NCBI GenBank assembly: GCA_946965045.2 | Contig: OX337238.1 | Coordinates: 806,001 to 870,000, forward strand | Reading direction: 5' to 3' | From: Epithemia pelagica | Taxonomy: Eukaryota; Protista; Bacillariophyta | Length of the DNA: 64,000 bases | Shown here: piece by piece, positions 8,085 to 37,097 of the stretch | Layout of the letters: every line of letters starts with the position of its first letter | Position numbering within the stretch: the stretch's first letter is position 1 | Position numbers and translations under genes: made by a program | Notes under the pieces: model-generated | What the model saw: only the letters and a program-made list of their open reading frames with translations | What the model was told of the DNA's origin: nothing | Databases searched by the model: none

Positions 8085-8621
8085 TTACGCACTTTTGGCA
8101 ATGATTGGTAAACAATCTGGTAATGACTCTGATGGAAGAGTGGATGGCATCTCGACGCCAGCTTCAGGAATTTCCATACCGTTCTTCATCAAGTTCGTGG
8201 TATAATATGCCACTGCCTGCGTCCTCCGGTTTGGTCGAGCCTTTAGTCGAATCTGTGGCATTCCATTCGTGCGGATGCACGTGTCGGAGATCTGATCAAA
8301 TTCTTCTGGAACCAGCTCTGGCAAGGACCCCTGGTTCCGGTGGTTGGAAACCTTGCTCTTGATCCAGTGTTGCGATGGTGACACGTCCAGATCCGTCCTC
8401 CACAGCAACTGATCTTGGCCATGAGGTGAATGTTGGTGGAGTGCGTCGTGATAGGTACAGAGAGTTCTTCCGCCATGATCCATGGCAAATCGCACTCGTT
8501 TCTTGGAGCGTCGTTCGTGGTTCCGGCATTCATCCCATCGATCAATGGTGGCGTCCGGGCATGGTTTGTCTACAGGGAGCCTGCAAACTCGACGAGTATG
8601 AGAAGCTCTAGTAAGGTCCAT
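8085..8621 (-). CDS. Hypothetical protein (DRWDE...KKRVRF motif)
   Basis: ATG-initiated 178 aa ORF with protein-like composition and no recognised domain. Confidence 0.55.
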   Translation of the reverse strand: MDLTRASHTRRVCRLPVDKPCPDATIDRWDECRNHERRSKKRVRFAMDHGGRTLCTYHDALHQHSPHGQDQLLWRTDLDVSPSQHWIKSKVSNHRNQGSLPELVPEEFDQISDTCIRTNGMPQIRLKARPNRRTQAVAYYTTNLMKNGMEIPEAGVEMPSTLPSESLPDCLPIIAKSA

Positions 8622-9866
8622 GATGAGAATAACAAGTAGGAGTATCTCATTCTACAAAAGCGAGAGATACTGATTACTGGTTTGGTGAGACTGATTCTTC
8701 AATCTTTTGGTTCAAAGTTGTCATCCTGTATGAGTTGGTTGGTTGCTTCCGACTTTCCCTCTCACTTTTCACCAACAACTACTTTGATTTGGAGTATCGA
8801 TAAATCCTTTGGCTCCAAGGTCTGTTTCATCTCTTTCTTTCTTGTAACCGAAAACCGAACGCAAATAATTCATTCCGAAACATTGAATCGGGCCATGCAG
8901 AAATCCCTGCGAGAAATCAAGGAAGTGAACCCCCTTCTGATTCTGAAAACACAAGCCTTGGGCGAGACTTTGAACTTCTTTGAACAGACAACATCATAAT
9001 AGAGAAACAGAGACAGCTCTGCTGTGTCTTGTGTCTCTGTTCCTGTTCGGTGTTCGGTCAATTCTCAAGGTGATTGGTGATCCGCCCAGTGCCCTCCCAA
9101 ATTTCTCGGCTCGCGTCTCGCAAGGAAATCTTTTTACTTAAGCTCAACTGAGTTCTAAAGTATAGCCCTTCACAGCTATGACATGATGAGCTTATTAAGA
9201 ATATTTCACTGATTAGTTCTACCCACTATAGGCTTATGTAAGGGCTTACTATCATCTGCTGCACAAGATGTCATAGGAGACTTCTTTCCCGAACTTTGCT
9301 TGACACGTCATGCGCATGTGAGTTGGGGGATCGTGAAAGACATACATTCTTCTGATAAAAAGTAGATCTTTTCCCTACCAGTACTAGTCTCTACCTGTAC
9401 GAGTACTAATAGTCGTATTGTACTCCTACTGGTACGAGTACTTCGACCAGGACTCCTATTCTGGATCTTGTATTTGGTAGCGATAGCACAAGGCCAACAG
9501 GGCTTACCATTATCTTGAAGAAAGTGATTCGGGCGCTCCCTTTGTATTTACACTTCATTTATTGCCCTTGCATATTGAAAGCTGAAAGTTGATGGATGCC
9601 GAGCGATGGAAGATGGAATCTGGAAGCTGGAATCTGAGCTGGCGAGTTACCGGTTGAGCTGCATCATTCTGGATTCTGGATTGCCAATTACCCTTTAGAA
9701 AACCTCAGGTATGAACAGTACCATTACCACTAATTAAAGTACTCTAAGCCTCAAGAGAGATCTTGGCACTTGTCAGAGGGTGCGAGGAGCACACGAGACG
9801 ATCTCGTCATAATTTTGCTCTTCCAACAACGTTTTCGCTTCGTCCACCAACTTTACTCTGCAAACC

Positions 9867-10508
9867 ATGCCCGCCTCCTCACCCACAGCTGAGCGATCCG
9901 TCGTCCACTACTCAACGCCAGGTTCCTTGAGAGACGCATTGAGTGAGACATATACCAGTGACGACTCGGATTGGATTCTGGGGATTACCGACAAGGAAAC
10001 AACAGTTGTACAGACCGTTGCAGGGGAGCATCGGCGGTTGTCCGTCTTGGGGTCCTACAACATTCTTGACTCTCCACCCGAACTGGAGTTTGATTGCATT
10101 ACTCAAGAGGCAAAAGACTACTTTGATGTACCTATTGCGGTGGTAACCCTGGTTGATCTGGGTCGCCAATGGTTCAAGAGTATTAAAGGTCTTGATGCCA
10201 AGGAAACCCCAAGAAGCTGCTCGTTTTGTGCACATGTCGTTCAGCGACAAGATGAACGCTGCAACCCAGTTATGGTCATTCCAGATGCTACGAAGGATGA
10301 TCGTTTCAAGGACAATCCATTGGTCAAAGATGGACTCAAGGTTAGATTTTATGCTGGTGCTCCTATTGTCAGCCCGGAAGGACCCAAGCTTGGATCATTC
10401 TGCATCATTGACACAAAGCCACGTCCAGGAGGTCTAACGATCAAAGAACAACTTCGCCTTCAGGATCTAGCTCGTCTGATTGTCTATCAAATGATCACCC
10501 GCTGTTAA
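9867..10508 (+). CDS. Stand-alone GAF-domain protein
   Basis: RLSVLGSYNILDSPPELEFDCIT...VVTLVDLGRQWFKS...RSCSFCAH...PDATKDDRFKDNPLV...RFYAGAP...GSFCIIDTKPR is the typical sensor-kinase GAF pattern. The stop follows directly with no output domain. Confidence 0.9.
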   Translation: MPASSPTAERSVVHYSTPGSLRDALSETYTSDDSDWILGITDKETTVVQTVAGEHRRLSVLGSYNILDSPPELEFDCITQEAKDYFDVPIAVVTLVDLGRQWFKSIKGLDAKETPRSCSFCAHVVQRQDERCNPVMVIPDATKDDRFKDNPLVKDGLKVRFYAGAPIVSPEGPKLGSFCIIDTKPRPGGLTIKEQLRLQDLARLIVYQMITRC

Positions 10509-11528
10509 TTTTGTACAAAAGGGACGAAGAGACGGTAACGACAGAGCTGAGAGCTTGGACTCGGAGGGCTTCCTGAATCCAACACGCGAATTGAACTGAG
10601 ACAAATAATGACAATCCCAATCACATAGTTAGCCGGTCTCCCCCAACCCAGACCCAACCGCTATCGTAAGACAGTAGCTACCACATTGTTTACAACAACG
10701 TAGTCGTGCAATGAACAAGTTTTTGTAATTTTAGTGTAAGATTATGGAGGAAGGCAATAATAAGTAGTGCTCAGGGCTCGTGTCGGGGCACTCAAGGGCA
10801 ATAATCAAATGAGAATTGAGATCGGAACTCGTAGTGGCCCAACCCGATCGTCATTGCTCATGATTCATGATGAATGATGATGACGTGCTCACAAGTTTTT
10901 TTACTCGTACAGATCTCCATCGCGTATCTCGCATCACTGAGACCCAGTTTTTCCACTGCAACTTTGGACTTTGGAGCCTGAGCAAGCCAATCCAATCTAG
11001 CGACTATGATACAGGTATCCATAGCCGGCATATCCATATTCGTGGAGATATGTACAAAGTACGACATGATGACGAGTCGATTCTCATTCAATGTTCTCAA
11101 CTTCTTCTTCTTCGCTGAATAACATAAACATACGACTACCTCACTGAACTGAAACATCTATTTTCACTGTTTCTTGAAGTCAAGCGATATTGATGTTACC
11201 CGAAGGATCCGATGGTGGACGAAGGAAAGCTAAAGCTGCTTTTTGATACCATTGCGATTGCTCCTGACAATGGCAGCAACATCATCCTCTAACACAATAG
11301 AGCGAGAGCCATTGGCAGAAATGAGTAGCATGTTCGTTTAATTGGCTACCTATCTCTAGAGGAGTAGAGGTTTTGTGACGCTCAAATGAGGAGGTACTTT
11401 CGGTAGACGAGCAGACGCTCGTGGAACGTGGACCATACGCGTTTGGGTCGCTTCACGAACATCAATGTCGACAAGCGTCATTCGATAGAAAAAGTTGCCC
11501 ATGGCACTCCAACTCCACCTGGTTGACA

Positions 11529-13544
11529 ATGATCGCACCGTTGTATTTTACATTCATCCAATTCTTCTTTGTTGGATCAGCTCTTCTGGTACAAAATCCA
11601 TCTTTCACAACTAGTCGTGCGAAACAAAGCGACCATGCCAAAGAAAAAGACTTGGTGTTTGTTGGCCATTTTCGAAACACCGTCCCAGACACGCAGCACG
11701 GCGGTCCATGTGGAGGACGACCGTCTCAAGACAGATCGAGTTCAGCTTTATCATGCATACCAACGCCTGATGTCGAACAGGAAGGATCCTCTGTTGAAGA
11801 AGAAGTAGACTCGATTGATATGGACAAAAATAACAAATACATTCTTGGCTTGATTGATAATTTGACAACGGCTCTCGACAAGTACATTCTTACTGGGTCA
11901 AAGACTGCCGTGACACAGGCCCAAAACATTCTTGTGACAATTGAATCTCTTGCCGAGAATGAAAAACTGGTCCTTAGGGCACGCAGAATGTTCCAGCGAG
12001 CGGGGATTGTCTTGCCCTCCTCTTCACCCTCAACCAGTGCAGGTCAAGTTGAGGGATCGATGGGCAACGCGGCGATGAATGGAGACGCTTCGGACCGAAA
12101 ACGTGAGGCCGAAGAAAGACTCAAGTGGGAAGAATCGAGAAAAGAAGTGGCCACACCTGTCACTCCTTCAAAAGACTCTAGTTTCACACAGGAAGGAGGT
12201 CGATCTGCGCTGAGTCGGAGAGCCATGGCAAACGGAAAACCAGATTTTCTCATGGGTCAAGTTATGAATCAGTCGCTTGAGAAGATCACTTCATCAAGCA
12301 ATGATAAAAAAGAGCTTGAGAAGGCTCTGTCCTCATCCATAGAGGCCAGTGCAGTTCAGCAACCCGAGGACAATGCGACGAGTGAAGAAGCGGCTGATAA
12401 GGTTGCCGAGCTCGTTGCTCGAGCCGGAGCTGCTTCTTCGTTTAAAGGAGAATCCCTCGGTATTGGCGGGCTCGATGACGTTCTCGCCGAAGTGAAACGT
12501 CGCGTATGGACTCCACTAGCAGCTCCACCTCGATTACTGGATGAACTTGGCATCTGCCCAGTCCGTGGCTTGCTGCTTTACGGAAAGCCTGGCAACGGAA
12601 AAACACTCTTGGCGCGCAAGCTGGGTCAGATATTGTCTCCGCTACGTCCCGTGACGGTGGTTTCTGGACCAGAAGTGATGGACAAGTTTGTGGGAAGCAG
12701 TGAAAAGAATTTGCGTGAAATTTTTGACCATCCACCCGATATATACGATTCGTTTCGAATTGGGGAAAAAGATGGCGGTGCTTCCATTGCGAACGCGGCC
12801 TTGCATGTTGTCGTGATGGATGAGTTTGATGCCATTGCTCGTCGACGAGGGGGCCGTGGAGGCACGGGTGGAGACCAGAGCGACGCCGGCGTAGCAAGAG
12901 ATAGCGTCGTCAATCAGCTTTTGGCCAAAATGGATGGCGTAGATCCCCTCTGTGTTCCGACCTTGGTGATTGGCCTCACCAATAAGCGCAGCTTGATCGA
13001 TCCTGCTCTTCTTCGACCGGGACGATTTGAAGTTCAAGTCGAGGTACCTCCGCCGCGAACGACGGAACAACGAGTGAGTATTCTCAAGGTGCACACCCAC
13101 AATATGCACCAAGCAAATCGCTTAAGTTTGTCAGCCGGAAAGAATGGTGAAAGTGATAAAGACTGTACAACGCCGGAAGTATCGTATGATGAGATGTTAC
13201 AGACCCTTGCGGAAAAGTGTGATGGCTTCTCGGGGGCGTCATTAGCAGGTCTTTCCAGAGCGGCCGCGAGTCGAGCGTTGGAACGAGCTGTGGAAGATTC
13301 CATGACTATGGAGGCTGCCAATGGCGACACTTTGGGTAGCTCCTCACGGCTGCTACGCGAATGCATGGTGACCGTGGCGGATTTCGAGGCGGCCATTGAG
13401 GACATTCGTTCCGGCATGGGTGACAGTGACCACAGCATTGAAGACGAGGAAGAAACTGAAGAAAAAGAATCTTCCAAATCAGAAGACAGCGATGTAGGAA
13501 CGGATTCTGAGGAGGAAGTGGGAGATTCAAGTGGTGGAGAGTGA
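11529..13544 (+). CDS. NSF/Sec18-like AAA+ ATPase with one AAA module and an N-terminal signal peptide
   Basis: GIGGLD, Walker A GKPGNGKT, SGPEVMDKFVGSSEKNLREIF, Walker B VVMDEFDAI, VNQLLAKMDGV, and SRH IGLTNKRSLIDPALLRPGRFEVQVEV. The first ATG is at 11529 (MIAPLYFTFIQFFFVGSALL); the track's GTG start at 11421 is an unlikely extension. Confidence 0.88.
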   Translation: MIAPLYFTFIQFFFVGSALLVQNPSFTTSRAKQSDHAKEKDLVFVGHFRNTVPDTQHGGPCGGRPSQDRSSSALSCIPTPDVEQEGSSVEEEVDSIDMDKNNKYILGLIDNLTTALDKYILTGSKTAVTQAQNILVTIESLAENEKLVLRARRMFQRAGIVLPSSSPSTSAGQVEGSMGNAAMNGDASDRKREAEERLKWEESRKEVATPVTPSKDSSFTQEGGRSALSRRAMANGKPDFLMGQVMNQSLEKITSSSNDKKELEKALSSSIEASAVQQPEDNATSEEAADKVAELVARAGAASSFKGESLGIGGLDDVLAEVKRRVWTPLAAPPRLLDELGICPVRGLLLYGKPGNGKTLLARKLGQILSPLRPVTVVSGPEVMDKFVGSSEKNLREIFDHPPDIYDSFRIGEKDGGASIANAALHVVVMDEFDAIARRRGGRGGTGGDQSDAGVARDSVVNQLLAKMDGVDPLCVPTLVIGLTNKRSLIDPALLRPGRFEVQVEVPPPRTTEQRVSILKVHTHNMHQANRLSLSAGKNGESDKDCTTPEVSYDEMLQTLAEKCDGFSGASLAGLSRAAASRALERAVEDSMTMEAANGDTLGSSSRLLRECMVTVADFEAAIEDIRSGMGDSDHSIEDEEETEEKESSKSEDSDVGTDSEEEVGDSSGGE

Positions 13545-26801: not shown

Positions 26802-27401
26802 ATGATTGGTGTGATTCCCCGTACTGGGTGGCGATTCTGTACCAAGCGAAACCAATGGAGTCATTCACTGGTGCATCGACCGTCCCGATTGGAAAGTTTC
26901 CTTCCTATCCACAAATGGGGTGGACAGCACAACAGCTACAGTTCGGGAAAAATCGAAATGTCGATGGATGAAACAGCCAAAGCCTTTGCCATTTTGGCTG
27001 ACAAGCTCAAAGAATCCGAAAAGGCAATCGAGGTTGAGAAGAAATTGGAAGACATAACGCAAAGATTGGGTGTCATTTCCAAGTCGCTGGATCAGTTGGA
27101 ACAAGCCAGTGCCGCTGAGTTGAAAGAGTCCAAACTCCAATTTGCAATGAACTATTCCGATCACATCATCGCGCATTATCAACGAAACCGTCCTGGCAAC
27201 AACCGCTATTTTAGGATTTACACTGTACTTGTTCATGATACGTTGATGTCGTTTAGACAGAATCAAGGTATGTGGCTTCCTGAAGCTATGGACGAGAACG
27301 ACAGAAAAACCTATGCGGAGGCGCTTTTTTGGTATCTGGGTCATCGCCCCATTATACAATACAACGATGAAGAACAAAAATACGCCATTAGATACGCATA
27401 A
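26802..27401 (+). CDS. Family A copy 3 (intact, 199 aa) with a mitochondrial-type presequence
   Basis: MIGVIPRTGWRFCTKRNQWSHSLVHRPSRL is Arg-rich and acid-free. It is followed by a coiled coil and TLMSFRQNQGMWLPEAMDENDRKTYAEALFWYLGHRPIIQY...KYAIRYA. Confidence 0.8.
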   Translation: MIGVIPRTGWRFCTKRNQWSHSLVHRPSRLESFLPIHKWGGQHNSYSSGKIEMSMDETAKAFAILADKLKESEKAIEVEKKLEDITQRLGVISKSLDQLEQASAAELKESKLQFAMNYSDHIIAHYQRNRPGNNRYFRIYTVLVHDTLMSFRQNQGMWLPEAMDENDRKTYAEALFWYLGHRPIIQYNDEEQKYAIRYA

Positions 27402-27559
27402 CGTCCAATATCCATTATAGCCATATCGGTCAAAGCAAAAGACACCACTGTGAATATTTAAGTTGCCCATTTTCGATCCGGAAAGGACCAAAGTGAATCC
27501 GTAGCCGTCAACATAATTCTTGATCAAATCAATTCGTTTTGTCCCATTTCCACACCTTG

Positions 27560-28080
27560 TCAGCGCTGAATATCTGCATTCCAGGTACGCTGCTGAGTTC
27601 CGATATTCGCCACAGGGGCCTGTTTGAACTTTCCATTAAGGATGCGCATTGAAGAAGTGTAAAGCTTGAGATCTCCAATCCTGATTTGCTTCCGTTTCAA
27701 TCGACTCCTTGGGTATCGCGTCTGTTCTCCGTACTTAGGTCAAATATGGTGCAAAATTGATATCATCGTGGTCTCCGGGCCAGTGATGTTTTCGTGGTTG
27801 CAGCTGTAAGTGAATGATCCATGGGGGCTCGTGAGATGGCCAACACTACTTTCTTGGGAGTGCCGAGACTTTGATAAAGACCAAGATCTGTTTCCGTACC
27901 CATTCCTGAGGATACAAACGACAAAGACCCTCACCCTTCTCAAATGTCAGGTCGTAGATCAAAGATCCAACCACCCAGTTTAACCGCTTTCGTTCTTTGC
28001 ACGTTCTAATATATCATGCATGGTTCCCCTCCCTTGATTGTTTTTTTGTATTTCAGCGGCTGAAGGAATCGACCCACGAT
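27560..28080. repeat. Module C copy 2
   Basis: Collinear with 25010-25560. The A2-C1-B3 and A3-C2-B4 units have a period of ~2520 bp. Confidence 0.8.
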
Positions 28081-28084
28081 CACC

Positions 28085-28370
28085 ATGGTTGGTCCAGATT
28101 GCATTCCCCGTGTTGAAAGCTGGTAAGTCACATGCAATACCACCATGTGATCTGGATGCGGTACAATGGAATTAATGCTCAATCGCTTGTTCGTCGTAGA
28201 GTATTTGGCCACCCGTCTCGCCCTGCGCCAATCAGACAGCACTCCAGCGAACCCACAGCACGTCACCTGGAGGTGGGAGAGGTCAGGGAAATGCTGGTGG
28301 TTGGCCCTCGATGACGGGCAAGCCAAGTGGTGGCAGTCGTTCCAAGAACGCATCCCTCAAGCAAAAGTAG
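28085..28370 (+). pseudogene. Family B copy 4, degenerate
   Basis: The C-terminal frame reads GGGRGQGNAGGWPSMTGKPSGGSRSKNASLKQK*. The upstream homologous segment (RRVFGHPSRP) is in another frame. Confidence 0.6.
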
Positions 28371-28657
28371 GCACGGCTGCTTGGTATATGGAACGAGAAA
28401 CGCGCCATCGTCCGTTTGCCGGGTGAATCAACTTAATTGCTGATATCGGTGCAGGCGCACGAAACGGGACCTAGAAATAGTTGGTCTTGATAGTACGGTG
28501 AGTATCCCGGAAAAAATCCACGATATCCTTCGGCTCATTGAGGAATCCAAAGAGAACATTTGTGGTTGCATCAATGTATCATATTTCATACATTGAGGAT
28601 CTCTGAAAAAGTTTGCTCTCTTCGCTAGAGACTAGTTGTTGTTGTTGTTGTGTCATC

Positions 28658-29270
28658 ATGTTTGGTGCTATACCTTGTGTTATTTTCCTTTTCTGTTCCA
28701 GCCGCTATGAATGGTCGCATTTGCCGGCTCAGCAGTTTCGAGCACATTGCGTCGATGTTTCGCTTCGTGCTGGCAAGAAAGACGGACAATCCCAGCAATC
28801 CACCCCAACGAAGAAGCAGAAAAAGAAGGTCTCTGGAGGAGAAACCACCAAAGCCTTTGCCATTGTGGCCGACAAAGCTCAAGGAATCCGAGAAACCAGT
28901 TCAGTATAACAAAACGTTGGACAAAATAGCCCAACAGCTGGGCGTGATTTCCAAGTCGCTGGATAGATTGAAGCAAGACAGTGCCGCCGAATTGAAAGAA
29001 ATCAAGCTCCAATTTGCCATGGACTACACCGAAGATATTGCCCGGCATTTTTCTCGACACTCCCATCGTGCCTTCTATTATCGTCTGAACCAAGATTCTG
29101 TTAAGGAAACTTTGATGTTGTTTCGACAGAATGGAGGTTACTGGCTCCCCGAACCTATGGACGAGCACGACAGAAAAGCCTATGCGGACGCGCTTTTTTG
29201 GTATCTGGGTCATCGCCCCAGAATACGATATGATGATGAAGAAGAGAAATACTTCATTAGCTACGAATAA
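28658..29270 (+). pseudogene. Family A copy 4 with a +1 frameshift (pseudogene or assembly error)
   Basis: ATG 28658 gives MFGAIPCVIFLFCSSRYEWSHL...ETTKAFAIVADK. GACAAAGCTC has one more A than GACAAGCTC in copies 2, 3 and 5 (28874-28876), and LKESEK...ALFWYLGHRPRIRY continues in the next frame. Confidence 0.8.
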
Positions 29271-29774
29271 GTTTTCAGGTACATTATAGTCGGTTCCGAG
29301 TATTGAAGATTTCCGTTTTCGTTCCGGAAAGGAGTAAATTGATTTCATTTCACATATCCGTTTGCTTCATTTTGTCAATTTCTTCCTTCCCCTCTTTGGG
29401 GTAAAATCAGCAGCATCCAATAGTCGTCCTCCAAAGGTTGCGAAAGGTCGTCGGTTGCCTTTGAAGCTCTTCTCGGATGACCATGGGTACACTCATCCGT
29501 CCTGGTGAATCCTTTGCTTAAAAGGCTTTGAACAATGCTTTGTACACCTTGTCAGCTCGAAAACTCTGCATTTCCAGGTTCGCTGTCAAGTTTCAGACGG
29601 ATGCGAATACGAAAAATGTATAAAATCTCCCGTCCTGGTTTGCTTCTTTTTGAGGGGTAGGCGATATTGGTCACGTTTACAACTCAAACAACCGATCGAG
29701 TTCACCGCAAAGTCTGAGTCGCCTGTCGTGTCATCCACAAATCCCACAAAGTCCAAAGCATTGCGGAGACAGAA

Positions 29775-30338
29775 ATGATTGGTGTGATTCCCCGCACTGC
29801 TTGGCAGTTCTGTACCAAGCGAAACCAATGGTCTCATTCGCTGGTGCATCGAATCTCTCGAATGGAGACTTTACTTCCTGTCCATAGAAATTTTGGTGAA
29901 AATTACAACTCGGTGGACGAAACAGCCAAGGCCGTTGCTGCTGTGGCAGACAAGCTCAAAGGATCAGAAAAGACAATCGAGTGTGACAAGAAGTTGGACA
30001 ACATTATCCAAAAGTTGGATGCCATTTCCAATGAAGTGAAACAAGCCAGCGCCGCCGAGTTGAAAGCATCCAGACTTCAATTTGCCATGCGTTATACCGA
30101 ACATATTGCTCAATCGTTCTCTCTATGCGATGATAGCTACAGCTCTTATAACATGAACGAGGACTCGGTTGAATGTTTATTGCTGACCTTTCGACAGGGT
30201 CGAGGTTACTTTCTCCCCGAAGAAATTGAGGTAGAGGCGTGTGAAGACTTTGCCAAGGTTCTTGAAGATTACATAGGCCATCGACCCGTCGTGGAATATG
30301 ATGATGAAGTTGGCTGCTTCTTCCTCAGGTACTACTAA
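29775..30338 (+). CDS. Family A copy 5 (intact, 187 aa)
   Basis: MIGVIPRTAWQFCTKRNQWSHSLVHR leader nearly identical to copy 3. Core ETAKAVAAVADKLK...ASRLQFAMRY...YIGHRPVVEY. Confidence 0.8.
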   Translation: MIGVIPRTAWQFCTKRNQWSHSLVHRISRMETLLPVHRNFGENYNSVDETAKAVAAVADKLKGSEKTIECDKKLDNIIQKLDAISNEVKQASAAELKASRLQFAMRYTEHIAQSFSLCDDSYSSYNMNEDSVECLLLTFRQGRGYFLPEEIEVEACEDFAKVLEDYIGHRPVVEYDDEVGCFFLRYY

Positions 30339-30496
30339 TAGCACACCATGTGCGTGCACAAATTAAGAGCAACGGAAATTTTCAATCCATGTGGACACGC
30401 ATCTAAACAAACCCTTCTTCTAGCGTGCAGTTACCCTTCCTTGGGCGGACGATTTGTAGAACCATGGACCACCCGATTGTTTCCCGAAGAAAAAAA

Positions 30497-31021
30497 TCAG
30501 AACCCCGTCAGACCCTTTCCTTGCGCCATGGCCCGTTCGGATAAATCCGACAGTTCCTGGGGATAAGCCGCAATAAGACGATTGGATTCCCGTAGTAGCG
30601 TCCATCCTTCCTTGGCATGTGGGAAGAGCTTTTGGTGAATGGCCTTGTCCAGGAAGGCAGTTTCATGCATGTAGAGTCCAGCGCGGCTGAAGCATTCGCA
30701 GCATTCCGCTTCGCTAAGCACGTGTTTGTTTTTCAAATCAGAGTACCGTTGATGACCCTTTTCCACGTTTTCAAGAATCAGTTTATGGTTGTCCGTCATT
30801 TGAAATTCCCCGTGCTTGATGCTGGTGTACAGAGGTTCGTGTTCATCTTCACCGGACGGTAATTTCCCAGGCATTTGCGAACGCTGCAACAACGAACTTG
30901 AAGAAGTTGGGCCCAATGACGATGTTGTCGGCGCGCCAGCAAGATTGTTGGTAGAGCTGGAATCCTTGTTGGTTGAGATACCGCGTGACAAATGCGTAGA
31001 CCGTTGATCATGGGATTCCAT
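30497..31021 (-). CDS. Hypothetical protein embedded in the array (Ser/Thr-rich N-terminus, helical C-terminus)
   Basis: ATG-initiated 174 aa ORF with protein-like composition, divergent from family A copy 6. Confidence 0.55.
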   Translation of the reverse strand: MESHDQRSTHLSRGISTNKDSSSTNNLAGAPTTSSLGPTSSSSLLQRSQMPGKLPSGEDEHEPLYTSIKHGEFQMTDNHKLILENVEKGHQRYSDLKNKHVLSEAECCECFSRAGLYMHETAFLDKAIHQKLFPHAKEGWTLLRESNRLIAAYPQELSDLSERAMAQGKGLTGF

Positions 31022-31161
31022 CGTTGTCGATGAAGTTAAGATTGAGGTCGTACTGGAGGACGAAATTTGCCATTAATCCCCGACTCTGGCGCCGCCGTCA
31101 CGGTCAAAACCACAAGACTGAACTCAATCAGAAATCAGAACCAAGGATGCTACTACGTCTA

Positions 31162-31194
31162 CGTCACGTCACGGACCACGGGCGTGACGTGACG
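31162..31194. promoter_or_regulatory. Perfect 12-bp inverted repeat of ACGT-core (bZIP-type) elements in a divergent promoter
   Basis: CGTCACGTCACG (31162-31173), a 9-nt spacer, then CGTGACGTGACG (31183-31194). The repeat is seen directly; the function is inferred. Confidence 0.5.
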
Positions 31195-31457
31195 CGCCGT
31201 CAAAAAGTGACGAAAGCACGGGCTACTGCGCGGAAAATATTCGCGGTTCGCGCGCGGAGCTCGTACGTTGAGTTTACCCGAAAATTTGGGGTAAGGTAAA
31301 CAGGATCTTTCGCACCCCGTTGTCGTGCCCACGTCACCACACCAAAGATACCTTATACCTCCCACCATCCATCATACGCACTTATAAAACAAAAAACATC
31401 AAACCATACTACTTTCTAGACTTGTCTGGTCCATTCTACTGATCGTTTGACGAAATC

Positions 31458-32173
31458 ATGCTCGGGTTCCTTCCTTTGATTGCCTTTTTGTATTTCAACC
31501 GCAGAAATGGTAGCTCCGACTCGTCCGTGGCGCCAATCTTTCGAATCGAAAAGAACCACCATTCGGCACGAACACTCGTCGGAGACGACCAGACGAACAG
31601 CAGACATGTCGCTGTGAGTGCATCGATGGAGAATTCCAGAGAGACTGGGCCAAGCAAAGAGAGTGAGGCTCCCAAGAAGAAGCGAAATCGTTCCAAAAAC
31701 AAGAATAACAACAACAGCAATGGAGGAACGATGGGTGAAATGGCCAATGCCTTTGCCAATGCGGCCAAATTGCTTCAGAATGCCGAACAAAAGGTGGAGT
31801 ACGATGAAACATTGCTGGACATGGAACGTCAACTGGGTATCCTCGTTCATTCACTGGACGAATTGAATGAGACCAATGAGGCGCAGTTAAAAGAATCGCG
31901 ACTCCAATTTGCCATGAGGTATACGGCAGAAACGGCACACAAATTCAATGACGCCTGCAATTCCGTCCACCATCACATTGATGCATCCTATGTCGAGGGA
32001 GTTTTGTGGTCGTTTCGCAAGAACTGGGCTCACCTGTTACCGGCGGCATGGGATGAACAAGCCAGAAACATCTTTGTCGTCTTGTGTTGCACGAAATTTT
32101 GGGTCATGAACCAACCATGGATGCCGTACAAGATGGGGACCATGCTGGAAGGTATTCTGTTCGCTATGACTAA
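31458..32173 (+). pseudogene. Family A copy 6 with a frameshift near 32075-32088 (pseudogene or assembly error)
   Basis: MANAFANAAKLLQ...LKESRLQFAMRY...VEGVLWSFRKNWAHLLP. The homologous tail LHEILGHEPTM...YSVRYD* (stop 32171-32173) lies in another frame than the 287 aa track ORF. Confidence 0.75.
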
Positions 32174-32474
32174 AGATCTGCGTCATTTTCACTGGGACAG
32201 CAGTTCCCTGGGTGACAAATCTGTGCAAACCATTGTTCACTCCATGGCCCCCCGCGGCAGCAAGGTTGTCGAGAGGTATGCCTGCTACTGTGACAAGCTA
32301 ATGACGAGAAGTGCTCAATAAAAGAGATGGAGAAGTCAAATGACCAGCATCAATGGCAATATGGAGATTAAACAACTAAGCGTCCGATGAGAACCTTTCT
32401 CTCCTTCTCTACGACATGTACTTCCTTCGCAGACCTATATATATCCTGCAATTGATCTTCCGACAAGTCAAAGA

Positions 32475-33659
32475 TCAAAGATCCCATGCACTCGGCGCGT
32501 CGGTTGATTCTTGATTTCCGTTTTTGGTCTTGCTACCATCGGGGCAAAACTCTTGGAGGAGCTCTTCGACAATGGGACGGTGATCGTACTGGACATTAAA
32601 CTCAAACCACTTCTTCATTTGTCCCTTGGTTTGAACTTTGGACTTGAGGAAACGGTTTGGACCAAAGGCAAAACTTTCGGCTACAATACGAGGCAGGACA
32701 CCTTGGATTTCCGCGACGTGGACACAAAGACGAATTCCTCCGTCTTGTAAAGGTTCCCCCTTACGGTCCACCGCGACAATGTAATGTTTGGCGTCGGGAC
32801 TGGAACGCCGCAAACTTTCTTGACAAGAGAAGTATCCAGCATAGGATCCTCCATTGAGCATGTAGTTCTTGGCGTTTTCAATGGCTTGGCGGTCACGAAG
32901 GGACTTAATCTCGTACGCGCTCTGACACGCAGAACACTGCATGTCGTTCCAGCTGCGGCCACCGCGACACCATTTCAAGGTCAGTTTCCTCATACACTCC
33001 GGGTTGCGACAGGAAACGGAGGAATTGTTGTTGATATGTGAGGCAACCAGTGCTTCGTACACAAAACCCAACAGTTCGCCCGCCTGCATTCCATTGGCTC
33101 GCCATCGGCGACCGTAATATTTTACCCTGTCTTCTCGAATACCAGCATGTTCAAATCGATAGAATGGATCCAAATGCATGCGCTTGAATTGGTTGGTTCT
33201 GTACTTGGGCTTGGGGACTACGCAAAACCGGTGATTGAATTCTTCGAGGCCGTATTTCCTCGCCATTCGTGCTTTATCTGGGCCCTTGATGTCCTTCGAA
33301 TCAACAACGAAGTAAGGAGGAAAATGATCAAGATCGTCAACGTATGAGGTATCTAGTCCGACTTGGCGTTGAAGGTGATCACGTAATACATTCTCAATGG
33401 CCTCATTTGGGTCTGCCGGAAGGTCACGAAGATCCTCGTCGTAGTTTGACAGTAGTTCTTCATAACTGTCTTGAGGGTCGTGAGCCTTGAGCATCGTTTT
33501 GATAACATCCTTGGCAAACTGACGGTGCTTCCTACGAGCGTCTGGGGATTGAATCGTCAAATTGACTCCCCATTCCAACAAATGAATGCTCAAGCTGGGA
33601 GGAAGGGTGTTTCCGTCTTCCAAAGCTTTCGTAAGTTCGACACAAAAAGCGCCCACCAT
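32475..33659 (-). CDS. Putative Zn-binding PD-(D/E)xK nuclease-fold protein, DpnI/DRP-like
   Basis: E202...C217xxxxC222...D239xxC242xxC245xxxxE250xK252S...LNGGSY parallels the DpnI catalytic domain (E..CPNC..D F CxxC..ELKS..INDGAY). Recognised by eye. Confidence 0.6.
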   Translation of the reverse strand: MVGAFCVELTKALEDGNTLPPSLSIHLLEWGVNLTIQSPDARRKHRQFAKDVIKTMLKAHDPQDSYEELLSNYDEDLRDLPADPNEAIENVLRDHLQRQVGLDTSYVDDLDHFPPYFVVDSKDIKGPDKARMARKYGLEEFNHRFCVVPKPKYRTNQFKRMHLDPFYRFEHAGIREDRVKYYGRRWRANGMQAGELLGFVYEALVASHINNNSSVSCRNPECMRKLTLKWCRGGRSWNDMQCSACQSAYEIKSLRDRQAIENAKNYMLNGGSYAGYFSCQESLRRSSPDAKHYIVAVDRKGEPLQDGGIRLCVHVAEIQGVLPRIVAESFAFGPNRFLKSKVQTKGQMKKWFEFNVQYDHRPIVEELLQEFCPDGSKTKNGNQESTDAPSAWDL

Positions 33660-34436
33660 TGCTTCCTCTTGTTGCCTCGATTGTATCGCCTTTCTTCAAT
33701 GACAAGATCGTCCATTCTGTGGGAAGAATCCAACACACGAAGCAGATAGCGCGAACAAAGTTTCACGTCAAATCCTCATTTGAATGGCTCTTATTGGCCG
33801 GTGTAAAGCCAGGTTATGACTCATGCCCTGCATCCACTTTTCTTGAGCTCGAATGAAAATTACTGGAAGAAAGCTGTTGACCCGGTAGGTTGACCATGAA
33901 TGTCGCTCAAAAGGACCTTTGTTCACCCCATGGAGTAAACTCTATAACTGTTCTCATAACAACGGCTTCCGTAGCTCTAAAGTCCGCCGGCAGAAGAAAG
34001 GGAGTATAGCAACTGCGCTCTAGCTGGTGCTCTAATGTGCGCCTTCTCAAAGATTCAATGTTGTCATGTGGTGCCATACTTGATTCCCTTACGCAGGTGC
34101 TCTCGAAGAGATAGACAATCGATTGGTGGCTATCCATACAGAGATTTCCCGGTAAGGAAAAGATCATTTCGCTTTACAGCATATGGAACAGCAATCCTTC
34201 AATTACTTTGAAGAGGTGACTTCGATCACGATGAGTAGCGATTGTTGGATTGAGAAAAGTCTGGGCTTTCTGACTAGTAGGAGTAGTACGGTTTTCACAA
34301 GTACCTTTCCAATCAGCTGCTCAAACGGCTTGGAACAAAACCACGAAGAAAAGTATGGGGGATATTGTGTCTGGTTTTGATTCTATATGTTTTTTTCAGA
34401 GTATCTCTACTGTTACGACAGGGCACCGTTTGGTAG

Positions 34437-35630
34437 TTACAAAAGTTCAGCGTAGACTCCGGTTCCAGGGCATCGCAAACGGACTAGGGTCAACTCCGTG
34501 CATTTTGGGCACTGCGAATTATCGCGTCGATTTACCACAATGTAACCCATGCGGAGCAAATGGTTTTGCAAGTCCACCATATCCGTAGGACTAAGAGGTG
34601 GGTTGAAATAATGAATCTGTCCAATCAAGCAATAATGATTGAGCGTCGAGAAGAGAATCAACCAACCCCGGCCGTGAGTAGGAGTGCCAAATAGAGGCCA
34701 ACAGGAACTTCTCTGTAACAAGGAATCAATGACGTACCTCCACAAGAATCTGCATCGGCATCAAAAGCTGTTCGGATTCTTCCAAGTGTTCCAGCTGCGG
34801 CCACGAACGAAAAAGTCCAATTTCGGAACCTTCAACGTCAATCTTCAACAAGTCAATGCGCTTATGTCCCAGTTTCTGTTGCATCTCCAACAACGTCCAG
34901 GACTTCCCAACCATATTTTTCTTGGCAGGTGGTGCTGATGGGTCTCTCGGATAGGCCGTCAAACAGACATGGTGAAAGGTCAAACGTGGGTTTTGTGGGA
35001 CCTGATAGCGACTGAATCGGCCAGTACAGTCAAATGTGTGGACTTCGCATGGAGTCTTTTCCAACACATCCAGTTCAAATTCCCACTGGTTGTTACTGCC
35101 CAGTGAATAGACAATGCATTTGTCTTCATTCTTCGGAACGATACTTCCTCTTGTTGTGGGTGTTATGACATAACTTCCAAGTTCCTTGAGGCCGCAAACC
35201 ACTTTCGTGTCGTCAGAGTCACATGGTGCGCCAATACACTGCTGGTCAGTGCAGTTGGCCAATTGATTGAAGGGGAAGAATCGCTGGTGGAGGGTTGCTG
35301 ATAGATTGCTTTGCTGGCCTCAGTGCCTTGGGCCACACGTCCATGGGTCAGCATTTCATTCATTTTGTTCGAAAGTGTGTCTAACGGCTTGGCGATCGAC
35401 TGCAAATAGGGATTCTGTGTACAGATCCTTTTGGAGAATGCAGCTGCCATTTCCACTGTCACTTGTTTACTCTGAAGCTCCGTTTGGACATATTCTAGAA
35501 CGTCAACACTTGACCGACGGTCTCCTTCTAACATCCAAAAGGATGGAAGGGACAGTAGGATACAGACCGAAAGTATATACCACAGGTGTTTACCACGAAG
35601 GCTCCACTCAGTTCTATTAGCTTTCATCAT
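34437..35630 (-). CDS. METTL24/FkbM-like SAM-dependent methyltransferase, type II membrane anchored, 1 intron and 1 frameshift
   Basis: N-terminal TM (LWYILSVCILLSLPSFW), KVVCGL, CIVYSLGSNNQWEFE, CEVHTFDCT, IDLLKIDVEGSE, QILVE|IH. Intron 34737..34617 (GTACGT...ACAG). A frame break at ~35290-35320 precedes HQRFFPF. Confidence 0.85.
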
Positions 35631-36008
35631 CGTTATGTTAACGAACGGTATTTTTGATTTGAGAAAAATTTGTGGACGAAGGTTGATCGCAGCCCAAAGC
35701 CGCGCATGGCACCCCATATCACGCCGGACTCTCTAACGCTTACCGACCAGCATTTATAGCCCGAGACTCAGGACTTGACCTGCAATCCCCTTAACCATAT
35801 TGTAGTAGGAGGCTCAGCCGAAGACCCGAACCCTCCACAAAAAAACGAGAATCTTTTTCTTCGTCGCATAAAACAACAGAATACCGGTAAGGAGACAACA
35901 AATATAACACTCGGTCTCTGTATCTCACTTTGTCTATTCTTGATCTGACCTGCGTGGTAAAGACACGAGGGAATCGGTTATCGGAACGACCGAAGGAAAA
36001 GTACAAGA

Positions 36009-37097
36009 ATGAGCAGCAAAAACAACGGTGATCCGACCAAGGATCCAGGCAAGCCACAGGGCGGTGCGAACACTACCAAATTGCAAACCTTCACGCTGGT
36101 GGATCAAAATGGCCCTGTATCGTCATGGCAGTGGTCCATGGGTGCCTTGGTCTTTGGTTTCTTTGTGGTACAATGGGTTGCCTCTATTCTGTCACCCCTT
36201 TTGTTCGGCTTGTCCTTGTATTTTCAAAACTGGATCGGAGTCTTGCTCATTATCGGCGTGACGATACTGGCCTATGTGCCGTGGTATCCCAATCCGCATC
36301 CTGTGGCCGAAGCCATTCGACATTTCTTTGTCCACAATACACCCTTTTACTTTCGGTCCATGAAAGTGATTAGTGAAGGCCAACCCTTACCCGGCCAAGT
36401 GGATTCTCCTTCCACAACAACAACAAAAGCGACGAATGAACCCCCGACTCTGTTGTCGGTTCATCCACACGGAATATTCACACTGGGTTGGTCCATGCTC
36501 TACCTTCGGTTACGGTAGGTGGACTTTTGCTTTTCCAGTGCCTTTTTTGTGTCGCCTTTTTTTCGCTTGTTTTCGCGCGTGACGGGCAATCCAGCTAGTG
36601 CTGACAAGGCCAATATGCAAGCCTTGATGCGAAAGGGTCGGCATTTGGCTCTGATTCCGGGAGGCTTTGAAGAAGCCACCTTGACCATCAATAGTCCTAC
36701 GGTGGAACGGGTCTACATAAAGAACCGCAAGGGCTTTATCAAATTGTGTTTGCAACAGGGCTATCAAGTTCGGCCCGTGTACAGTTTTGGCGAAGTCGAG
36801 GCCTATGACAATGTGCAAGGACAATTCTCGTTGCGACTCTTGATGAATCGTTATGGCATTCCAGCTGTGATCCCCTTTGGATGGTTTCCCCTTCCCTGTT
36901 TGCCCAAACCAAATGTGAATTTGTTGGTCGTTGTAGGACCACCCCTCGTCCTTCCCAAAGTGGCCCAGCCCTCCAAAGAGGACGTACAAACGTGGCATGA
37001 CAAGTACATGGAAGCCTTGCAGGCACTGTACCATCGATACAAGGTTGAGGCCTATGGTCCAGAATTGGCCAAGACCAAGAAATTTGAACTTTGGTAG
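36009..37097 (+). CDS. DGAT2: Diacylglycerol acyltransferase type 2 with an in-frame TAG at 36516-36518
   Basis: HPHG motif (SVHPHGIFTLGW), LIPGGFEEA, RKGFIKLCL, PVYSFGE and VVVGPPL. The two track ORFs (36009..36518, 36519..37097) are in the same frame. Confidence 0.88.

Follow-up and report, generated by a model that had tools for sequence, protein, structure and literature searches.

The diatom Epithemia pelagica carries, within a 64,000-nucleotide stretch of contig OX337238.1 (assembly GCA_946965045.2, positions 806,001 to 870,000 of the forward strand; hereafter the window, in whose numbering all unprefixed coordinates are given), an intronless minus-strand gene that encodes a protein of 394 amino acids, P0001 (32475..33659). 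Judging from sequence comparison and a predicted structure, P0001 is most probably a zinc-stapled, Mg2+-dependent PD-(D/E)xK DNA endonuclease, with a catalytic core remotely homologous to that of the restriction enzyme DpnI. The assignment is founded on the observed homology, predicted fold, conservation and purifying selection, from which we infer zinc binding, catalysis and substrate.

In the proposed mechanism, P0001 would be a functional, nuclear-encoded, non-organellar and metal-dependent endonuclease. Its nuclease domain (residues ~188–358) together with helix 84–99 would be a remote homolog of the type IIM enzyme DpnI and the neisserial Dam-replacing protein (DRP; Pfam family PF06044). 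Given the homology to DpnI, C217, C222, C242 and C245 would hold a structural Zn2+ that staples the active-site hairpin, Mg2+ would be bound by E202, D239 and E250, and K252 would complete the PD-(D/E)xK centre for hydrolysis of DNA phosphodiester bonds. The diatom clade appears to have replaced the C-terminal winged helix of DpnI by an N-terminal module of ~187 residues, and would constitute a divergent, unannotated group of diatom proteins with shorter relatives in Nucleocytoviricota.

Relationship of the nuclease domain to DpnI

P0001 was used in an exhaustive HMMER search over 1.84 billion representative sequences, with clusters defined at 50% identity. Relatives of ~30–38% identity were found in 169 clusters at E ≤ 1e-3 and in 73 at E ≤ 1e-10; the closest from any other organism was 38% identical, and most were 350–450 amino acids long. 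On these sequence grounds P0001 is not an orphan, being a member of an unannotated family that comprises no fewer than 169 clusters, in which every protein bearing a name is labelled 'hypothetical' or 'uncharacterized'. A word-index protein search with P0001 returned only the protein itself, the same search with the domain profile returned only four family fragments, and Pfam recognized no additional domains in ten long members (530–1194 amino acids).

Conservation was read from an alignment of 80 members, which share ~30% identity (mean column identity ~15%). All four Cys residues (C217, C222, C242 and C245) are invariant in this alignment, and the candidate catalytic positions are retained in 97% (E202), 99% (D239), 96% (E250) and 97% (K252) of the members. 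G271 (97%) and S272 (95%) are also conserved, and R299, P323, F330 and W351 (97% for the last) are nearly invariant. Since the catalytic residues other than Cys are kept over so wide a divergence, we take the family to consist of enzymes and not merely of zinc ribbons.

The domain map that emerges from conservation and the structural model comprises a family-specific, mostly helical N-terminal module (residues 1–187; 33099..33659, minus strand, as are all parts of the gene), and a DpnI-like PD-(D/E)xK nuclease domain (residues 188–358; 32586..33098) identified by profile and structure comparisons (A3 against the PDB, hhalign, VIA and the ESM Atlas). A short C-terminal tail follows (residues 359–394; 32478..32585), in which DSSP and the per-residue confidence indicate a helix at 361–377 and then a segment of low confidence. 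Within the nuclease domain lie the predicted active-site Glu, E202 (33054..33056), on helix 194–211; a predicted Cys4 zinc site interleaved with D239 and E250-x-K252 (residues 217–252; 32904..33011); and a G270-G271-S272 motif (32844..32852), 90–97% conserved, which hhalign places opposite the D-G-A(-Y) of DpnI.

Taken alone, P0001 matched PF06044, 'DpnI / Dam-replacing family', with E 0.13 (12.3 bits) over residues 220–262 (hidden Markov model positions 35–75), and had no match in NCBIfam and no sequence match in the PDB. Across the family, PF06044 was matched by 58 of the 80 members (best E 7.8e-6; the highest score among members listed individually was 21 bits), with no other nuclease family recurring. 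The DpnI signal is far beyond chance because of this conservation in the family, although the single P0001 sequence is not significant by itself. When residues 188–358 were cut out and made into a profile of their own (A3), the best PDB sequence match was DpnI (4esj, E 0.0085), and the seven key residues (the four Cys, D239, E250 and K252) were paired one to one. A match of the full-length family profile to Ecl18kI in the PDB was rejected as spurious, resulting from low complexity.

A bacterial comparison set was assembled by searching with a degenerate DNA motif derived from the 4esj alignment, which gave 119+ prokaryotic loci and 101 full-length DpnI proteins; the Streptococcus oralis protein (L025:2469-3233) is a canonical DpnI, scoring 285 bits against PF06044 and 120 bits against DpnI_C (PF17726). 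Local hhalign comparison of A3 with these 101 proteins gave a probability of 95.1% (E 3.4e-8) over 64 columns, within which the GGS[YF] of the diatom family stands opposite the DGAY of DpnI. In global mode the probability was 89% over 135 columns, and E202 was placed opposite E25 of DpnI. The active site of DpnI consists of E25, D53, E64 and K66, and the enzyme binds an unusual Zn2+ on four Cys residues, one pair of which follows E25 and precedes D53 while the other is in the hairpin that leads from D53 to E64-K66 (PMC3424567). The order of helix Glu, Cys pair, Asp, Cys pair and ExK is the same in P0001, and the spacing D-x2-C-x2-C-x4-E-x-K is identical to D53-x2-C56-x2-C59-x4-E64-x-K66 of DpnI, with a distance of 11 from Asp to Glu. 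The first Cys pair differs, being C-x4-C (CRNPEC) in P0001 and CxxC in DpnI and most family members, and overall identity between P0001 and DpnI is only ~13–15%.

An AlphaFold model of P0001 built with a 150-sequence alignment had a predicted local distance difference test score (pLDDT) of 84.1 and a predicted template modelling score of 0.85; the single-sequence run reached a pLDDT of only 34. DSSP assignment of the model places E202 on helix 194–211 and finds strands at 228–231, 240–242 and 248–254, with D239 directly before the second of these strands and E250 and K252 on the third. The modelled layout corresponds to the canonical alpha-beta-beta-beta-alpha-beta core of PD-(D/E)xK enzymes. 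The sequence-only reading of this DNA had made its claim depend on D239, E250 and K252 lying in a restriction-endonuclease core, and had named AlphaFold and Foldseek as the means of judging it; the model puts the three residues in the PD-(D/E)xK layout, and Foldseek ranked DpnI both first and second (probability 0.8, E 0.085).

An unbiased VIA scan covering 48,161 chains gave a consistent picture, with ~45 of the top 50 entries being PD-(D/E)xK nucleases aligned over residues ~190–355 (Z 6.2 for Hjc, 5.4 for SwaI and 5.3 for DpnI). In a second VIA comparison, DpnI (4kyw_A) came first, with Z 7.4 and a root-mean-square deviation of 4.4 over 147 residues (chain residues 5–161); its Z was 1.5 above that of the next entry, and the alignment spanned model residues 87–356. 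Helix 84–99, which packs onto the nuclease core in the model, thus falls within the DpnI alignment. The top two matches of an ESM Atlas shape search were bacterial PF06044 clusters. DpnI is accordingly both the best PDB sequence match and the best structural match of the domain, and its homology with the DpnI/DRP catalytic domain is supported by five lines of evidence (Pfam, PDB profile, hhalign, structure and a viral bridge sequence described below). The core claim of the earlier reading, a DpnI/DRP-type PD-(D/E)xK centre with interleaved Cys4 and a DGAY-equivalent motif, is borne out by these comparisons.

Several points weigh against the assignment of P0001 as a DpnI-related nuclease. P0001 scores under the PF06044 gathering threshold (12.3 against 26.7 bits), and significant profile similarity spans no more than ~64 columns of the core and does not extend into the C-terminal half. 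The Foldseek E to DpnI is weak, and no structural Z score reaches 8; according to the tool's own warning, such scores can reflect a common arrangement. The placement of the active-site residues was read from the DSSP assignment of the model, which is a predicted structure. RNA support is also thin, consisting of one short contig per allele from a run of unrecorded type.

Gene model, haplotypes and transcription

The open reading frame (ORF) at 32475..33659 is complete, with an ATG start and 394 codons plus a stop. ORF listing and translation bore out the span and the intronless structure given in the earlier reading, along with every residue position that it named: E202, C217, C222, D239, C242, C245, E250, K252 and LNGGSY (residues 268–273). 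An in-frame stop codon lies 12 codons 5′ of the ATG, and the ATG at 33659 is therefore the first possible start. M1 is aligned to the start Met in 84% of the 80 homologs, from which it follows that the intronless gene model is complete. The G+C content (~0.48) is ordinary for the window, and no paralog was found elsewhere in its 64 kb. P0001 and its relatives have hydrophilic N-termini, some with basic extensions, and no signal or transit peptide was found on those examined; the protein is probably nuclear or cytosolic.

The assembly contains a second copy, P0153, on a different contig, and its upstream neighbours are those of P0001. The genomic runs X1–X3 carry both forms, so P0001 and P0153 represent two haplotypes. 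The copies differ at 38 nucleotides (3.2%), and of the codon changes 25 are synonymous and 13 non-synonymous; the ratio of non-synonymous to synonymous substitution rates (dN/dS) is 0.13, with no change at a Cys or catalytic residue. The P0001 gene is under purifying selection. Directly upstream of it, the haplotypes show a presence/absence polymorphism of ~2 kb (~34229-36193; L127:7467-9431). Methyltransf_22-like ORFs at 34726-35262 and 35163-35717 (both minus strand) occur on this haplotype but not on the other contig (L129), and runs X1–X3 have a loose end at 34223 that agrees with the polymorphism.

The runs X1–X4 were available as contigs, which are unsuited to determining transcript ends or levels. 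The P0001 locus was found in none of the runs recorded as RNA. Run X4 is RNA-like, showing patchy coverage and a contig that skips 121 nt in the neighbouring gene (34617-34737, minus strand); the skipped segment has CT..AC ends, GT..AG in the sense of the gene, and is a spliced intron in a Methyltransf_22-like gene, an indication that X4 is an RNA library. In X4, each allele is represented by a single 152-nt contig (33530-33681) at the 5′ end of the P0001 gene, which gives a weak hint that P0001 is transcribed. A P0001 homolog is present in the transcriptome of Ditylum.

Distribution of the family and its giant-virus relatives

The named members of the family come from centric diatoms, namely Ditylum brightwellii (MMETSP transcripts, UniRef) and Thalassiosira exigua (NCBI KAL7545788.1). 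Further members are located on eukaryotic contigs of megabase scale, or have ordinary eukaryotic genes as neighbours, among them genes for a clathrin adaptor, DAGAT, CREG, FBPase, an ALG-type glycosyltransferase with an intron, and DSHCT. Presence in centric diatoms and in such ordinary eukaryotic contexts indicates that the gene is old in diatoms and not a recent transfer. The possible recent horizontal acquisition raised by the sequence-only reading is thus not upheld, and a transfer, if there was one, would be ancient and may have involved giant viruses. The homolog P0028, from another megabase-scale algal assembly, has Copia-type (RVT_2) retrotransposon ORFs on both sides (L128:1-3510 and 8241-12665).

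In a viral structure library, only two matches were significant, a Megaviridae environmental sequence (E 3.4e-4) and E5ESH8 (E 6.4e-4), both uncharacterized. Viral DNA in IMG/VR was searched with the family motif W-x-D-x2-C-x2-C-x3-[YF]-E-x-K, which was found at five loci. Three of these lie on contigs of giant-virus metagenome-assembled genomes with 17–19% G+C and encode proteins of 286–331 amino acids (L132:6637-7497, minus strand; L133:204-1070, plus strand; L134:5011-6006, minus strand). The similarity of this trio to the diatom family reaches 89 residues beyond the motif by which they were selected, and their hhalign probability was 83% to the diatom profile against 24% to bacterial DpnI. 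The uncharacterized PF06044-type proteins of giant viruses, this trio and those of L130 below included, share with the diatom proteins the signature W-x-D-x2-C-x2-C...E-x-K-S...GG and the FE helix, lack the diatom N-terminal module, and are encoded in extremely AT-rich DNA. In each protein of the trio, a diatom-type core stands at the N-terminus and is followed by a long C-terminal region rich in Asn, Ile and Lys; the L134 protein additionally contains an internal duplication of ~40 residues.

A fourth of the five loci, on a viral contig (L130; IMGVR_UViG_3300035698_005799; 91 kb, 27.5% GC), carries a tandem set of DpnI-like genes (L130:2995-5016) consisting of two intact ORFs of 163 and 293 amino acids and a 38-amino-acid fragment; the two further tandem ORFs of the locus had not been pre-selected by the motif. 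The nuclease genes are located between genes for topoisomerase IA and the RNA-polymerase subunit Rpb6, which identifies L130 as a contig of Nucleocytoviricota. The product of the 163-amino-acid ORF (L130:4528-5016, minus strand) passes the Pfam DpnI threshold (33.2 against 26.7 bits), matches the PADLOC model 'Type II methyl-directed restriction enzyme', and scores 19.2 bits on the diatom profile and 26.8 bits on the bacterial DpnI profile; by its scores on both profiles, it bridges bacterial DpnI and the diatom family. A Nucleocytoviricota cluster of 167-amino-acid PF06044 'Dam-replacing family' proteins in the language-model atlas is a lead only. The columns that can be aligned among bacteria, viruses and diatoms number ~64–70. 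By profile comparison, giant viruses thus encode proteins intermediate between the DpnI of bacteria and the diatom nucleases, and the survey of taxonomic spread proposed in the earlier reading places the family in diatoms, with relatives in giant viruses and in bacterial DpnI. The bacterial DpnI motif had no match in the viral contigs, and two peptide patterns taken from 12 family sequences retrieved no viral relatives.

Specificity and candidate roles

The catalytic machinery of P0001 is inferable from DpnI, whereas its specificity for DNA sequence or modification is not. The sequence-only reading had seen no DpnI-type C-terminal winged helix, and this proved correct: the winged-helix family PF17726 had no match in P0001 and was absent from the 25 families most often matched by the 80 members, and only ~36 residues follow the P0001 core. 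DpnI binds the methyl group in a cleft formed by L129, R135, W138 and G140 and contacts bases through Q18, N48 and R126 (PMC4117772). In the bacterial set of 101 proteins, each of these seven residues is at least 96% conserved. Between the diatom and DpnI domains, however, hhalign gives the C-terminal halves a probability of 0.5%, which amounts to no profile similarity; DpnI N48 stands opposite a variable column of the diatom family, and W351 of P0001 comes to lie opposite DpnI W138 only in a part of the global alignment that has low confidence, with no Gly at +2. Dependence on N6-methyladenine (6mA, or m6A) is therefore unsupported, because the winged helix is missing and the methyl cleft is unmatched, and the earlier suggestion that P0001 may target modified foreign DNA is likewise unsupported for adenine methylation, the specificity residues being unmatched in the diatom family.

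The ~187-residue N-terminal module belongs to the diatom family and is an addition relative to DpnI. It contains the conserved residues W30-G31, P81, A87, D108, P115 and L163-D-P165-x-x-R168-F169, and no relatives of it were found in the PDB (profile A5), in the language-model atlas or by hhalign against the DpnI profile. The two groups also differ in their hosts, DpnI being bacterial and the P0001 family eukaryotic and, in its relatives, giant-viral.

One tentative possibility for the biological role is a housekeeping or structure-specific nuclease acting in repair, recombination or junction resolution, with no discrimination between self and non-self. Purifying selection and the wide occurrence of the family in diatoms are consistent with such a function, as are the ordinary cellular neighbours of its members, which occupy different loci in different species. 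The next-best folds are Hjc-type resolvases, RecU, and the lambda and RecE exonucleases (Z 5–6.2). Archaeal Hjc (1OB8, 2WCW and 1GEF) has the same minimal PD-(D/E)xK fold, with Z 5.3–6.2 over ~105–110 residues, but it lacks the zinc site and shows no sequence or profile similarity to P0001, the relationship being one of superfamily fold only. Identification of P0001 as an Hjc-like resolvase was demoted on this ground. All of the sequence-level signal points toward DpnI and none toward resolvases, ortholog identity of ~30–38% is unusually low for a core repair factor, and there is no fusion or neighbourhood tie to repair machinery. A housekeeping role is nevertheless at least as likely as a role in restriction.

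Innate restriction, in which P0001 would cut foreign DNA of bacterial or giant-viral origin that is adenine-methylated or otherwise modified, leaving the cell's own 6mA-free genome safe, is rather doubtful. It draws on the homology of the catalytic domain with a methyl-dependent enzyme and on the PADLOC match of the viral bridge ORF. Relatives occur in giant viruses and the family diverges fast, as seen in the 38% identity of the best match from another organism. The diatom Phaeodactylum has 5-methylcytosine only and no 6mA (PMC12695648), as a safe host genome would require. The highly conserved W351 and its position opposite DpnI W138 might also be read in this sense. On the other side, the methyl pocket and base contacts of DpnI are not demonstrably conserved, the winged helix that supplies its second m6A readout is absent, and P0001 and two other family members had no match to PADLOC restriction models. 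Plasmids grown in Escherichia coli are used routinely in diatom transformation, which counts against strong restriction at Gm6ATC. In its broadest form, the idea would be that diatoms, and possibly other algae, use a nuclear-encoded, DpnI-derived, modification-dependent restriction enzyme for cell-autonomous immunity against methylated giant-virus or bacterial DNA, with viruses carrying ancestral or counter-deployed versions. We consider this unlikely; if true, eukaryotes would have a counterpart to type IIM/IV restriction in which a new N-terminal module serves as the sensor and stands where DpnI has its winged helix functionally.

It is very improbable that P0001 is not an enzyme at all, its nuclease likeness being a relic or a coincidence in a zinc-ribbon protein that binds DNA or protein. 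Some members do weakly match Elf1 and Zn_ribbon_4, and the single-sequence match to PF06044 is not significant. However, E202, D239, E250 and K252 are 96–99% conserved over ~70% divergence and would not be required by a structural ribbon, and the match to nuclease folds extends beyond the ribbon to the whole alpha-beta core.

The suggestion made in the sequence-only reading that P0001 may act as the toxic component next to the fast-evolving A+B array, which would make this a selfish toxin–antidote locus, draws on proximity (the last family-A ORF, 31458-32321 on the plus strand, is 153 bp from the P0001 stop codon) but is hardly credible and was rejected, since a tblastn search with every ORF of at least 60 amino acids from 20–40 kb of the window against seven other homolog-bearing loci found only the nuclease itself, the contexts of the nuclease homologs are all different and unrelated, and array length varies between haplotypes while the nuclease is intact and constrained. 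The array region, which lies downstream of the nuclease gene and the first family-A gene, spans ~4.1 kb here (~27149-31300) and ~1 kb on the other haplotype (L129:5364-6427), so the two haplotypes of this individual differ in array copy number.

Returning to P0001 as a probable zinc-stapled nuclease related to DpnI, a census of PD-(D/E)XK proteins described PF06044 as bacterial with a patchy distribution (PMC3424549), and DpnI-type nucleases of eukaryotes do not figure in a review of adenine methylation in these organisms (PMC4738411). The literature found on DpnI together with diatoms concerned only uses of DpnI as a reagent. What is new here is an unannotated family, with catalytic and zinc residues intact, that ties diatoms and giant viruses to the lineage of the restriction enzyme DpnI. 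The finding may have a bearing on the efficiency of diatom transformation, and if the enzymes prove to be modification-dependent with a new specificity, they could be useful as reagents. The family is a candidate for restriction-like DNA surveillance, or for the exchange of nucleases between viruses and their hosts, in these ecologically dominant algae.

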